Source of the DNA: Guillardia theta CCMP2712
Lineage: Eukaryota; Protista; Cryptophyta
Assembly: GCF_000315625.1 (NCBI RefSeq)
Contig: NW_005434668.1
Span: forward strand, 115,184 to 179,183
Length of the DNA: 64,000 nucleotides
Direction of reading: 5' to 3'
The notes under the pieces are model-generated. The model ran no database searches. It was not told where the DNA came from and worked only from the letters and a program-made list of their open reading frames with translations. The position numbers and the translations under genes are program-made. Below are positions 14,432-19,676 of the stretch, in pieces. Position 1 is the first letter of the stretch; each line of letters opens with the position of its first letter.

Positions 14432-17400
14432 ATGCCCGCAACGAAACTTGCTCGCAAGTCACTCTCGAAAGCATCGAGCTCGTTTGAGAGCGAAGAAGAG
14501 ACAAGCTGCGAGGACGAGGATAGCTCCTGTGACTCTGACTTGCTCCAGTACGAGCAAGACGATAGCAGGCAGGTTGATGACACATCACTAGAAGCTGCTG
14601 AGCAGGACGATCTCTACAATGGCAAGCACGTGTGGGAGGTAGATGTGGGTGAAACTTACAACAAGCTCAAGGAGGAGGTGGAGGACACGTTCGTACGCGG
14701 GAGCTCAGGCAGACTACCTCGTCCTCATCAGGCAGACTGTGTGACGAGGCTGATCATGGAGCTGCGGATTGATCAGAGGAGGAGCAGGGGGCGACCAGTG
14801 AACTATCTCATCCAGCACGCTACAGGAACAGGAAAGAGTCTCACCATCTCCTCCCTCTGCCTCGCGCTGCTGCGGCTCCCTGACCAGGACTCTCCCTCCT
14901 CCTCCATCGTTGGATGGCTGCGAGCTGCGAGCTCCTCCCCCTCCCTCCCCTCCTCCACCTTCCACTATACGTTCGTCATCATCCTTACCGACAGACTTCA
15001 GCTGGACCGTCAGCTCGGGGATACGATCGAGCTCTTCCTCCAGAGCAACGGACATGGGCTGATCCGGTGCCGGACGACGGGAGAGCTGGCAGAAGCGATC
15101 CGGGACCCTTGGCACGGGGGGCCAAGAGCGATTCTGAGCACTATGCAGAAGTTTTCAGGGCTAGCAAAGACGCAGAGCAGGACGGTGGGGGAGGGGGAGG
15201 GGGAGGGAGGAGGGGAGGACATACTGCAGGTGCTGGTGAAACGGCACAGGGTAGCGATCATAGCAGACGAGGCACATCGCTCTCACGGGCAGAGGACGAG
15301 CCTCGCCATGCACGAGATGTTGGGGGGCCGTCGGGCTCAGAGTCCGAGCATCAACTACTTCGGTTTCTCTGCTACCCCCTCGAGGACAGCACTCAAACTG
15401 TTTGGGAGGAGACGAGCTGGAGGAGGAGGAGGAGGTGGTGGTGGTGGTGGTGGTGGTGGTGGAGGAGGAGGAGGTGGTGGTGGAGGAGGAGGTGGAGGAG
15501 GGCTGGAGTACGCACCAGCTCACTGCTACAGCATGCAGGAGGCGATAGCCGATGGGCATGTGATGAACCCGCTTGCAGACTACATGTGCGTGAAAATCAG
15601 CTCAGGGGCTGCGGAGAGGGAGAAGAGGCAGAAGGGCGGGAGAGCGGAGGAGAGGAGAAGTTCCAAGGCGCTAGTCTCCGCAAAGAGCGAGTATATCGTC
15701 AACGATTTCCTGGCACGGAGATCCGAGGTTGTGAGAAAGGAGCGAGCAGAGAGAAAGACAGGTAGAAGTGATGGAAACAAAAAGACAAAGGAGAAGATTG
15801 ATAGCAAGGGGACTGGGGAAGAGGAGGAGGAGGAGGGAGGTGGCGGCGGAGGAGGAGGAGGCGGAGAAGCAGGAGAAAGACCTTTCAAACCTCGAGCTAT
15901 GGTCGTGTGCAAGTCGAGGGCAGATGTGGTTGCCTTCACTCTTTGCATGAGAGAGTTGTGGAAGAAGAAATGCAACCTTGAAGTGACATCGCCGTCAACA
16001 AACTCTTGCGATGAAGAGGTCACGGTGTATGGAGCTTTCAGCGGTGAAGTCACGAGCAAGGTTTGGACGCAGCCTGCTGGGACGAAGAGGAAGAAGGAGG
16101 AGGAAGGGAGAGAGGAGGCTGTGTCAGAAGTTGGGCTGAACAGATGGGAGGCGAGCTTGGAGGACGCTGATATCCTTGTGGTAAGACGAAGAGGAGATGA
16201 TGTTGCTGTTTGTGTTGGAGGGAAGCAGCGGAGAATGAAGAAGTGTAAGGAGATGAGGAGGAAAAGAGGATGCAGAGAAGAAGGGATCAGTAACAGGCAG
16301 AGGAGGAGGAGTAGGATGCAGAGAAGAAGGCAACGGAGGAGGAGGAGGAGGAGGAGGAGGAGGAGGAGGAGGAGTAACGGGTGTTGCAGGTGTGCAACAA
16401 GCTCGAGACGGGGTTCGATGATCCACACCTCTGCTTCATGTATGTCGATCGACTTCTGCATGGCGCCAAGTGCGTTCAGATTCTCTCGCGCATCAACCGA
16501 ATTCACCCGCGGAAGAAAGGCAAACTAGACCTCTCAACTGCTGCAACTGCTCTCCCTTGTTCTTCTTCTCCTCCCCCTTGGCCCCCCCCACTTCTCGTCC
16601 TCGTCCTCGTCCTCGTCCTCGTCCTCGTCCTCGTCTACCTCGTCGTCCTCCATTTCCATCTTCTGCATTCTCTCCCCCTCCTCTACACTTTCTTCGTCTC
16701 CTGCTCTTGGCTGAGCTTGCTATCAGGGACTCGAGTCGTCGACTTTGTCAACTGCTCGGAGGCCATACGAACTTCTTTCGCCGAGTTCTGGGGGGAGAGC
16801 AAGTTAGGAGGAGGAGAGGCAGCTGAGGAGGCGAGAGCCAACACTCTCCTTGACGCAAGCCTCAATCGCTTGTTCTGTCTGCTCTCCTCCTCCTCCTCCT
16901 CCTCCTCCTCCTCCTCCTCCGCCTCCTCCTTCTTGTCATCCATTGGCGATCTAACCCTCTCAGAAGCAACAGCTCGGCTCTCACAGACGTCGGAGGACGC
17001 GGCGCAGGCAGCGAGGGACCTGACTATCTACCTCAACCTCTGTCAGCAGCTGAACTTGAGCAAGTACTGCATGCCGCCAACGTTCGCATCCTCTCTTCTT
17101 CAGAACCTGTCGAAGAAGAGCGCGAAGGGAGAGGAGAAGGGAGGGCAGGGGAGGAGCGTCAAGGGAGGAGGCAAAGAGGACATTCAGTTCAGTCAGACTT
17201 ACGTCGGGTCGATATCAGTCGAAGAGGATGACGCGGTGCGGGCAGATGTGTATCGAGCGCGTTCTCTTGCGAGTGAGAGTGTCGTAGCCATGACGTCCAA
17301 CACAACCTTGAGGTGAATCTCCTTGCTTGCTTGCGCTAAACTCTCATCAGTTCTCTGTGCTGCTGCTGCTGCTGCTGCTGCTGCTGCTGCTGCTGCTGCT

Positions 17401-19676
17401 GCTGCTGCTGCTGCTGCTGCTGCTGCTGCTGCTGCTGCTGCTGCTGCTGCTGCTGCTGCTGCTGCTGCTGCTGCTGCTGCTCTGATCTGACATGTTTGCT
17501 TCAATTAGGCAGCTTGCACATCAAACAGCCTTGGCAATGGGAGCTGAGCCAAAAAATCTCATCAGTGTTGTTTCGCGTCTCAAAGAAGACTTGAACAGAC
17601 AAACGTCTTCCTCCTCTCCTGATTCCCCCAAGATTCTCTCCATCCTACAGCGACTTGATCTGCTCCCGGTACCTTGTGTGTACTGTGCTGCTGCCTCTTC
17701 ATGCTCCTGGTCCTGTCCCTGTCCCTGTCCCTGCTCCTTCCCCTATTGCTAACGACCATTTTGATACTTTCTTCAATCGCCTCCTCCTGCTCGCTCTCCT
17801 GCTCGCTCTCCTGCTCGCTCTCCTCTTATCCTGCATTAGATGAGTAGAGACATTCTCGTCGAGACTGGCATCGGCATCCTCCTCAAGAGTTTCCGTCGCC
17901 ATTCCGACCTGCATGGTAAATCAACTGAGACATCTGCTCCTTCTCCTGCTCTTTTTGCTCCTCCTCCTCCTCCTCCTCCTCCTCCTCCTCCTCCTCCTCC
18001 TCCTCCTCCTCCTTGGTTCCTTGGCTGTTGTCATCTCCTTAGCTCGCACTGACGCACTCGCAGTATCCAGCATGAGCAAGGAGATCATTCAGCGCTGGAA
18101 AGCTCTCCTCTCTCCTACCTTCCCCAAGCAGCTGCCTCCCTCCTCCCTCACCCACGAATGCGCTTCTCACCTCCTCCAAGCTGAATCCCGAGAGAAAGTT
18201 GTCGTCAAGATGCTCAACGTGCAGCCTCTTCGTCCTCCTTGTTCTTGACCTCCTGCTCCTGCCCCTCCTCTTCTTGCTTGCGCTGCTCCTGCTCCTGCTC
18301 CTGCTCCCGCTCCCGCTCCTGCTCCTGCTCCTGCTCCTGCTCCTGCTCCTGCTCCTGCTCCTGCTCCTGCTCCTGCTCCTGCTCCTGCTCCTGCTCCTGC
18401 TCCTGCTCCTGCTCATTTTACCTTGTCCTCCTCACTGCCTTGCAGGCGCTCCTGCAAGACGAAGGAGCAGACAAGGGCACAGCAACCTCCATTGCAAAGG
18501 AGATAGAGTATCAAGTCGCGTCCTCCTCCATCTCCTCAGTTGCTGCTGGAGTGGGAGGAGGCGATCGGGCACGAGCATGGTACAACCAGAAAGTTCGTCA
18601 GCTACTTTTCAACCTCCGCGATCCTCGAAACGACGCCTTAAGGAAGCAAGTTCTTTCCTCCGAGCTTCCTCCCTCTTCCCTCGTCGTGGCGGATCCCGCC
18701 AAGCTCGCCAACTCTGACCTTGCTGCGTCCCGTGCCAAGTGAGCGGAGCAGAGGGAGCGGGGAGAGAGCGGATGCAGAGAGTGGTTGGAAGAGGAGGCGG
18801 GGGGGCGAGGCAAACTAGACAGTGGAGAAAGAAATCTGCAGGGGAGATAAGGCAGGTAGTCAGTCAGTCAGTCAGTCAGTCAGTCAGTCAGTCAGTCAGT
18901 CAGTCAGTCAGTCAGTCAGTCAGTCAGTCAGTCAGTCAGGCAGGCAGGCAGGCAGGCAGGCAGGCAGGCAGGCAGGCAGGCAGGCAGGGCATAGGGGAGT
19001 TGCTAGAGGTAACGGCATGATCTCCTGCAGGTTCAAAGAGGCGCTGGCGGCAGAACTCTCCGATATGGTTGAACCAAGTTTAGTCCCCAACACAGCAGAG
19101 TACGATTTTCCCAGACCCTCCACTCCTCCTCCTCCTCCTCTGTTCTCCTGTTCCCCTCCTCCTGTTCCCGTCCTCCTGCTCCTTTCCTCCTGCTCCTCCT
19201 CTCGTCCTCTCCTCCTCCTCTCCTCCTTCGCTGCTCCTCCCCTCATCGCCCAGCAGGTACGCTTGCCCCAGCTGCAAGAGCACGAACTGTCATGTCAAGT
19301 ACGCTCCTCCTTCCCTCTCCCGCGTTGCTGACGCTGGAGCGTGTAGGATAGGAATCAAAGGAGGTTGGATATCGTCTGAGAAGGAGGTGAGATTTGAGCA
19401 GAGGCGGAAGAGAAACGAGAGGCAACGGAGGCAAGGGAGGCAAGGGGAGGAGGAGGAGGAGGAGGAGGAGGCAACGGAGGAGGCAACGGAGGAGGAGGAG
19501 GAGGCAACGGAGGAGGCAACGGAGGAGGAGGAGGAGGAGGAGGAGGAGGAGGAGGTGGTGGTGGTGGAGAAAGAGGAGTTTGGAAAAGAAGAAATGAGGA
19601 GGCCTGATGGAATGAGCAGGAGACGCGGGAAGTCACATGTTGCGACTGTGGCATAGTCTTCGATGGGTTACAATGA
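14432..19676 (+). CDS. Type I restriction R-subunit (HsdR)-like SF2 helicase/translocase fused to TFIIS-like N-terminal, central and Zn-ribbon domains
   Basis: LIQHATGTGKS, IILTDRLQLDRQL, STMQKF, IIADEAHRSH, GFSATP, YSMQEAIADG, ILVVCNKLETGFDDP, YVDRLL, QILSRINR, VVDFVN; then ILVETGIG..IIQRWK, YNQKVRQLLFNLRDPRNDALRKQVL, CPSC..CCDC. Introns 16181-16389, 16520-16726, 17313-17508, 17669-17839, 17916-18063, 18219-18445, 18739-19030, 19100-19256, 19299-19346 and 19387-19619 all preserve frame. Confidence 0.85.
17358..17481. repeat. (GCT)n microsatellite, intronic
   Basis: Perfect trinucleotide run inside intron 17313-17508. Confidence 0.95.
18283..18413. repeat. (CTCCTG)n microsatellite, intronic
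   Basis: Hexamer array inside intron 18219-18445. Confidence 0.9.
18858..18987. repeat. Compound (CAGT)n(CAGG)n microsatellite, intronic
   Basis: Two abutting tetramer arrays inside intron 18739-19030. Confidence 0.95.

Follow-up and report, generated by a model that had tools for sequence, protein, structure and literature searches.

In the cryptophyte Guillardia theta CCMP2712, a motor of the type found in the HsdR subunit of type I restriction enzymes and a TFIIS-like module almost certainly form one expressed, fused gene. The gene occupies positions 14432-19676 of the forward strand of the window, i.e. the whole 64,000-nucleotide (nt) stretch of contig NW_005434668.1 analysed here, and is split into 11 exons by 10 introns. 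Its product of 1118 amino acids (aa) carries the motor in its N-terminal part and TFIIS domains I, II and III in its C-terminal part. Architecture and fusion, taken together, are held with high confidence. The explanation that best covers the protein as a whole is a motor of the HsdR type anchored to RNA polymerase II (Pol II), and its chances are rated a little better than even. The features of the gene are listed in Table 1.

Exon boundaries were derived from reading frames and splice sites. Nine of the introns are of the GT-AG type and one is GC-AG, and the spliced coding sequence of 3357 nt contains no internal stop. A preliminary description of this DNA, made from the letters of the sequence, had listed a series of motor and TFIIS motifs joined across ten introns without frameshift. 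All of these motifs are present, in order, in a single spliced reading frame, and the junctions 17312/17509 and 17668/17840 that it had named agree with those derived here. Public RNA runs were mapped to positions 14300-17420; for introns 4-10 (seven of the ten) the basis is the splice consensus together with homology.

Three contig runs, each from a different study, show the pattern expected of RNA. Individual contigs bridge 16179|16389 and 16517|16725, introns 1 and 2 are confirmed in contigs of two studies, and depth is zero in the intron 1 bin 16190-16294 in all three runs. At the joint of intron 2, a 3-nt ambiguity leaves GC..AG as the sole canonical-type boundary. This intron is in frame and free of stops, and its retention would lengthen the segment from motif VI to VVDF by 69 hydrophobic residues; the RNA contigs show that it is removed. 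An extra intron at about 16800-16960 was considered and ruled out, the contigs breaking at a masked CCT repeat alone and overlapping across it.

The behaviour of the contigs at the end of exon 3 bears directly on whether the two halves belong to one gene. Two adjacent genes could be read here instead, a helicase ending at the TGA at 17314-17316, directly after the exon 3 donor, and an independent TFIIS-like gene starting at the in-frame ATG at 17492, 17 nt upstream of exon 4. The preliminary description had named transcripts ending near 17316 as the observation that would speak for such an arrangement. The RNA contigs instead leave the genome at the 17312 donor: record 5 of run X1 (1165 nt) and record 18 of run X2 (1049 nt) match the genome to 17313 and then diverge, continuing for 754 and 917 nt, respectively, with no match to 17314-17420, and depth at 17345-17420, inside intron 3, is zero. 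Exons 4-11 amount to 892 nt, so that the 917-nt continuation corresponds to the remaining coding sequence plus 25 nt of 3' untranslated region. A search of transcript-derived proteins with exon 3 for junction-spanning products returned none, and the query's own sequence was absent from that collection as well.

The decisive support for a single gene comes from other organisms, in which the fusion exists as an uninterrupted open reading frame (ORF). The same order of HsdR-type motor, T1R_D3, TFIIS-N and TFIIS_M is found in eight other proteins: P0007, P0010, P0019 (Phaeocystis antarctica cluster), P0022, P0023, P0026 (Edaphochlamys debaryana KAG2501461.1), P0027 and P0069. Most homologues are metagenomic proteins. 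P0007 (1174 aa), P0010 (1159 aa) and P0019 (1216 aa) are each encoded on a genomic or metagenomic contig by an ORF without interruption, and P0022, P0023, P0026, P0027 and P0069 were added by a library-wide profile search. The best homologue is the Hanusia phi orthologue (65% identity), which has its N-terminus in common with the window protein. The conceptual spliced protein is colinear with the homologues over its full length, including the motor/TFIIS junction, and gap-free at every exon junction; a single alignment (109.9 bits) places its residues 854-1114 on a profile of the C-terminal module that was built from the homologues, without the window gene (profile A3). With two RNA contigs, eight fused homologues and three uninterrupted ORFs against it, the reading as two genes is highly implausible, and the claim of the preliminary description that motor and TFIIS domains share one gene is borne out.

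The gene for P0010 (L001, on a 4052-bp contig of ENA ERZ27293228) is intronless and overlaps its upstream ORF by 4 nt, a packing more in keeping with a virus or a highly compact genome than with a typical eukaryote. A viral or prokaryotic origin of the fusion, raised by these overlapping ORFs, was rejected on the strength of P0007 and P0019, whose neighbours are eukaryotic (DIRP/Myb, TPT, cyclophilin).

Judged by profile and modelled-fold comparisons, the motor is of the HsdR type and not an ordinary eukaryotic helicase of superfamily 2 (SF2), as the preliminary description had proposed. Exon 1 matches the Pfam families SWI2_SNF2 (PF18766, the HsdR-type ATPase family; 8.8e-17, 61.9 bits against a cut-off of 26.7) and ResIII (2.7e-12), and exon 2 matches T1R_D3-like (PF22679, HsdR domain 3; 5.2e-8, 33.9 bits against a cut-off of 27). 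The sole NCBIfam match is hsdR (TIGR00348), with 43.7 and 26.6 bits, far under the cut-off of 284.55, exon 2 falling at model positions 601-646. Walker A, DEAH, SAT and the arginine-finger motif VI are all intact. The family helicase profile aligns to residues 272-722 of EcoR124I HsdR, both motor domains downstream of the nuclease, with an E-value of 8.3e-23; its next matches are RadD (8e-7) and UvrB (3e-3), and no eukaryotic SF2 family is matched. A phmmer search of exon 1 against the PDB returned only poly-Gly linker artefacts, and the family profile was required. In an AlphaFold model of P0007 (predicted local distance difference test score 76), the 14 best Foldseek matches are all EcoR124I HsdR. 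RadD, Rad54 and LlaBIII come below HsdR, and the nearest Snf2-type proteins, Rad54 and Chd1, rank well below.

The helicase profile finds 8918 proteins among 1.84 billion representatives, and typical bacterial members of about 1000 aa, whose helicase begins at residue 270-300, reach 1e-85 to 1e-92 with it. P0007 on its own matches, at E-values near 1e-32, proteins named as type I restriction enzyme R subunits. A word-based homologue search returned bacterial R subunits only and no further named algal orthologues.

The window protein lacks the other parts of a restriction system that were looked for. The 95 residues before motif Q are acidic and Ser-rich (26 Asp plus Glu, 14 Ser) and match no Pfam domain, in agreement with the earlier description of an acidic N-terminus in which no nuclease is recognisable. 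The PD-(D/E)xK nuclease (PF04313, HSDR_N) is absent from every Pfam-scanned member of the eukaryote-type clade described below and present in bacterial hits, and in every TFIIS-fused member the sequence ahead of the motor is too short to hold a nuclease. The absence of an hsdM partner, previously noted for the window, extends to the whole 87-Mb genome (87,145,349 bases, 669 contigs), in which PF02384 (N6_Mtase, hsdM-type) has 0 matches in a search that was positive in 12 of 14 control prokaryotes; HsdS was not searched for separately. The motor itself is single-copy in the genome.

Further details concern the motor and the region that follows it. The stretch from motif III to YSMQEAIADG contains an in-frame run of 27 Gly (15414-15501). 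In the Hanusia orthologue the corresponding site reads just GGGSGGG, which points to a recent expansion tolerated in a helicase loop. A helical region of about 190 aa joins the motor to the TFIIS module and contains an in-frame poly-Ser run (16884-16930). Between the motor and TFIIS domain I, at about 17190-17225 (aa 781-795), lies a T[FY]xGxI motif that is kept in P0007, P0010 and P0019; it reads FSQTYVGSISV in the window protein and TFRGRIML, EFSGSIRM and TFSGRIPL in homologues. In the P0007 model this region is a confident beta-hairpin (residues 749-762).

By family profile, the C-terminal half corresponds to TFIIS over all three domains. Profile A3 aligns to residues 11-299 of 301 of human TFIIS (E 1.9e-35), with the three domains in one alignment, and to residues 22-307 of 309 of yeast TFIIS (E 1.3e-21); it also matches PHF3 (1.5e-13) and Bye1 (3e-9). 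Domain II is recognised directly in exon 7 by Pfam TFIIS_M (PF07500; 3.3e-16, 60.1 bits against a cut-off of 29.2). The match of exon 5 alone to Med26/TFIIS-N (PF08711) is weak (0.014, 15.6 bits) because domain I is divided among three exons; once spliced, the product aligns to A3 across domain I, and the homologue P0007 clears the TFIIS-N cut-off at 44.3 bits. A separate model of the TFIIS module gives fold matches to TFIIS in Pol II complexes, to structures of the TFIIS N-terminal domain (TND; root mean square deviation 1.4-3 A) and to the 1tfi ribbon (TM 0.60). In the Zn ribbon, CPSC and CCDC lie at the homologous place, the Cys columns are invariant, and the alignment of A3 to TFIIS runs through the ribbon.

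The RSADE hairpin is absent. The window protein has GGWISSEKEE (SSEK) in its place and the homologues have AEER, AQER, GQQR, SSNG or LTSV, with no conserved DE pair. The full TFIIS-like module of the preliminary description thus stands by position, family profile and fold, and fails at the catalytic loop and at the Pfam cut-off for the ribbon. A canonical TFIIS with an intact QTRSADEP ribbon is encoded elsewhere in the genome, at L012 (G000:C9, about 190.7-193.7 kb, minus strand), its TFIIS_M starting in an upstream exon; two more TFIIS_M loci lie at G000:C1:849070 and C2:1004170. With RSADE lost from the fusion and a canonical TFIIS present elsewhere, the TFIIS part of the fusion is, by this sequence comparison, an extra, accessory paralogue predicted to be incompetent for cleavage.

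The motor belongs, on the evidence of sequence trees, to an old and patchily distributed eukaryotic family. Unrooted trees of the motor core were built with FastTree (148 rows) and with IQ-TREE (LG+C20 PMSF, 76 rows). One branch, with a support of 100 in the Shimodaira-Hasegawa-like approximate likelihood ratio test (SH-aLRT), parts a eukaryote-type clade of 37-39 rows from a bacterial-type clade whose members have long N-termini and, where checked, HSDR_N. The eukaryote-type clade spans cryptophytes, haptophytes, green algae, oomycetes and Amoebozoa, with named members from Hanusia, Phaeocystis, Edaphochlamys, Pythium, Globisporangium, Pelomyxa, Thecamoeba, Tieghemostelium and Polysphondylium. 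Within it, a subclade with a support of 98 holds all TFIIS fusions together with oomycete proteins that carry an N-terminal WW domain (P0046, P0049 and P0050; Pythium, Globisporangium) and eukaryotic proteins that carry a TET-associated glycosyltransferase (TAGT) domain (P0066, P0083). Dictyostelid relatives with a C-terminal Surp module (P0028, P0031) stand in another part of the clade. Horizontal acquisition as an event specific to the lineage, as earlier suggested, is not upheld: the position of the motor inside a eukaryote-only clade rules out a recent transfer into the cryptophyte, and a bacterial origin, if any, is old. Such an origin is plausible because this type of motor is overwhelmingly bacterial in its distribution; the unrooted tree gives no direction.

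Table 1. Features of the fusion gene, with positions numbered from the first letter of the window; motifs are those of the spliced reading frame.
Feature	Position	Strand	Details
Exon 1	14432..16180	+	aa 1-583; acidic N-terminus, RecA-like domain 1 (motifs Q, I, Ia, II DEAH, III), first part of domain 2; covered by RNA contigs X1 records 1-3 and X2 records 14-16
Intron 1	16181..16389	+	209 nt, GT-AG; spliced in X1 record 3 and X2 record 16
Exon 2	16390..16519	+	aa 584-626; motifs V-VI; covered by RNA contigs
Intron 2	16520..16726	+	207 nt, GC-AG, in frame, stop-free; 207-nt skip in X1 and X2 contigs
Exon 3	16727..17312	+	aa 627-821; VVDF, helical linker, poly-Ser run, T[FY]xGxI motif; RNA contigs unbroken save at masked CCT repeat; colinear with P0007, P0010, P0019
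Intron 3	17313..17508	+	196 nt, GT-AG; holds (TGC)41 at 17358-17481; motor/TFIIS join
Exon 4	17509..17668	+	aa 822-875; start of TFIIS domain I; aligned to A3; colinear with homologues
Exon 5	17840..17915	+	aa 876-900; core of TFIIS domain I; weak Pfam Med26, A3
Exon 6	18064..18218	+	aa 901-952; end of domain I and linker; A3, colinear with homologues
Exon 7	18446..18738	+	aa 953-1049; TFIIS domain II; Pfam TFIIS_M; genome search match 5.9e-16
Exon 8	19031..19099	+	aa 1050-1072; domain II-III linker; A3
Exon 9	19257..19298	+	aa 1073-1086; first CxxC of Zn ribbon; Cys columns invariant in A3
Exon 10	19347..19386	+	aa 1087-1100; ribbon hairpin GGWISSEKE without RSADE; aligned with family members and TFIIS
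Exon 11	19620..19676	+	aa 1101-1118 and TGA; second CxxC
RPHQ	14720-14731	+	motor
QHATGTGKS	14813-14839	+	motor
TDRLQLDRQL	14987-15016	+	motor
QKF	15146-15154	+	motor
DEAHRS	15266-15283	+	motor
FSATP	15365-15379	+	motor
YSMQEAIADG	15527-15556	+	motor
KLETGFDDP	16399-16425	+	motor, exon 2
YVDR	16441-16452	+	motor, exon 2
QILSRINR	16477-16500	+	motor, exon 2
VVDF	16735-16746	+	motor
ILVETGIG	17852-17875	+	TFIIS domain I
IIQRWK	18084-18101	+	TFIIS domain I
YNQKVRQLLFNLRDPRN	18581-18631	+	TFIIS module
CPSC	19264-19275	+	Zn ribbon
CCDC	19638-19649	+	Zn ribbon
Intron microsatellites	17358-17481, 17958-18013, 18250-18414, 18858-18987, 19123-19244, 19436-19578

The introns of the gene are rich in repeats. 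Six of the ten are dominated by long microsatellites, several of them perfect or nearly so, and the repeat types comprise (TGC)41, (CTC)19, (CTCCTG)27, (AGTC)32 passing into (AGGC)n, CTC-rich repeats and a 33-nt GGA-rich repeat. Shorter repeats occur in intron 2 (16594-16650) and intron 4 (17784-17824). The repeat in intron 2, a CTCGTC hexamer, has a word depth of up to about 92,000 from all runs with loose ends on both sides, which indicates that the same repeat is present in highly expressed transcripts elsewhere and not that intron 2 is expressed.

The fusion protein can be set beside several known systems. EcoR124I HsdR (PDB 2W00) is the best profile and fold match among solved structures and shares both RecA-like motor domains, HsdR domain 3 and intact ATPase motifs. 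Unlike HsdR, the fusion has no N-terminal PD-(D/E)xK nuclease and no hsdM-type gene in its genome, is encoded by an intron-bearing eukaryotic gene that falls in a eukaryote-only clade, and carries TFIIS at the C-terminus where HsdR has its methylase-contacting end. TFIIS itself (human TCEA1, yeast Dst1) has domains I, II and III in the same order and a Cys4 ribbon in the homologous position, but its RSADE acidic hairpin, which is required for the stimulation of RNA cleavage, is replaced in the fusion by an unconserved loop, and about 820 residues of motor precede the module. Bye1, PHF3 and DIDO attach to Pol II through a TFIIS domain II and have no cleavage activity, as is proposed for the fusion; these proteins have PHD and SPOC domains, and neither domain III nor an ATPase. 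CSB/Rad26 and Mfd are double-stranded DNA (dsDNA) translocases coupled to stalled RNA polymerase, as is proposed for the fusion, and the resemblance is functional only. They act on upstream DNA through other polymerase-interaction domains, belong to the Snf2 type (CSB/Rad26) and the RecG type (Mfd), are related to the motor only as SF2 members, and neither Mfd nor CSB is among its sequence-profile or fold matches. The closest functional analogue is RECQL5, an SF2 helicase that occupies the same place on the RPB1 jaw as TFIIS, keeps TFIIS out and brakes Pol II via downstream DNA (PMC12440807). The two proteins are not homologous: RECQL5 is a metazoan helicase of the RecQ family and its KIX domain mimics TFIIS domain II, whereas the fusion, whose docking is predicted, carries a true TFIIS module.

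A mechanism can be proposed from what is known of the two halves. Domain II and the linker of TFIIS bind the jaw and funnel of Rpb1 and domain III reaches into the pore, elongation factors carry short motifs that TNDs recognise, and HsdR is a fast dsDNA pump that is active only while anchored. In the fusion protein, domain II and the ribbon would dock on the Rpb1 jaw and funnel of elongating Pol II in the manner of TFIIS, and domain I would join the network of TND-binding elongation factors. Docking would place the motor beside the downstream DNA entering the polymerase, where, anchored as HsdR is by its methylase, it would pump dsDNA with ATP. A stalled or backtracked polymerase could in this way be driven forward, or obstacles ahead of it cleared, without RNA cleavage. 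Docking of the module on Pol II is judged slightly more likely than not. A forward push or clearance of obstacles in place of the cleavage route is the favoured outcome, and the preference is a tentative one. The WW and Surp fusions of the sister proteins fit a co-transcriptional setting.

Several points weigh against this interpretation and the gene model beneath it. Pol II binding, ATPase activity and translocation are all predicted properties, and whether the motor pushes, brakes or evicts is not deducible from sequence. The ribbon of every member scores under the PF01096 cut-off (12.8 bits against 21 for the window protein), and its hairpin is poorly conserved; the ribbon may not enter the polymerase pore at all. 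On the side of the transcript, the partner of the 17312-to-17509 junction lies beyond the RNA-mapped stretch and the continuation of the contig is matched by length, and the raw-read run X15, at about 6% sampling, has zero depth on the gene. In the trees, the labels bacterial-type and eukaryote-type rest on named members and domain content.

An anchored protein could also act as a brake, holding the TFIIS site on the Rpb1 jaw, blocking canonical TFIIS and slowing or pausing Pol II through the downstream DNA, e.g. to limit transcription stress or transcription-replication conflicts. RECQL5 offers a precedent, being a helicase on downstream DNA whose KIX domain overlaps the TFIIS site and inhibits TFIIS-mediated read-through (PMC12440807). 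In G. theta canonical TFIIS exists as a competitor, and occupancy of the site by a ribbon without RSADE would exclude the stimulation of cleavage. No equivalent of the brake helix was identified in the fusion, however, and HsdR motors are well established as fast, processive dsDNA translocases and not unwinding helicases. Braking is regarded as unlikely, though it ranks next after the forward push. Eviction or termination, in which the anchored motor would pull DNA and dislodge an arrested Pol II as Mfd does, is distinctly improbable. A dead ribbon cannot rescue by cleavage, removal is another route, and this idea matches the Mfd analogy of the preliminary description, but Mfd and CSB bind upstream DNA while the TFIIS site is at the downstream jaw, and a release activity finds no evidence in the sequence.

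More doubtful still is a role in chromatin, DNA modification or genome defence in which the TFIIS domains serve as a recruitment handle only, through the network of TNDs and TND-interacting motifs, with no action on Pol II. The ancestry of the motor in a restriction enzyme is in keeping with such a role, and the TAGT domains of the sister proteins P0066 and P0083, in the 98-supported subclade, point to DNA-base modification. A defence role nevertheless finds no support here: the fusion has no nuclease, its genome has no hsdM-type methylase, and the partner domains are transcription-linked. Moreover, all eight homologues retain not just the TND but also domains II and III, a pattern that speaks for selection on the part that would bind Pol II.

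Full-text literature searches found no paper on an HsdR-TFIIS protein or on eukaryotic HsdR-type motors. The earlier impression that the architecture is undescribed holds in this respect; its homologues are already in databases, as hypothetical or TFIIS N-terminal domain-containing proteins. The sequences are thus public and the architecture unstudied, a conserved and undescribed combination of known modules.

The finding is of a natural covalent fusion of two well-studied machines that is kept across several algal lineages and expressed in G. theta. It offers a testable hypothesis, namely that an ATP-driven motor works at the downstream face of Pol II, and the loss of the cleavage hairpin suggests a route of rescue or control that does not go via RNA cleavage. 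The wider clade, with its WW, Surp and TAGT fusions, constitutes an uncharted eukaryotic helicase family. It is a real possibility, though rated somewhat below an even chance, that this is a hitherto unrecognised eukaryotic clade of nuclease-less, HsdR-derived motors re-targeted to transcription by swappable handles (a whole TFIIS in algae, WW in oomycetes, Surp in dictyostelids), in which the TFIIS form would represent a novel class of DNA translocase coupled to Pol II at the downstream jaw, alongside CSB/Rad26 and RECQL5. If true, the fusion would join the few translocases known to be coupled to a polymerase (Mfd, CSB/Rad26, RECQL5) and would show the domestication of a restriction-enzyme motor by eukaryotes.

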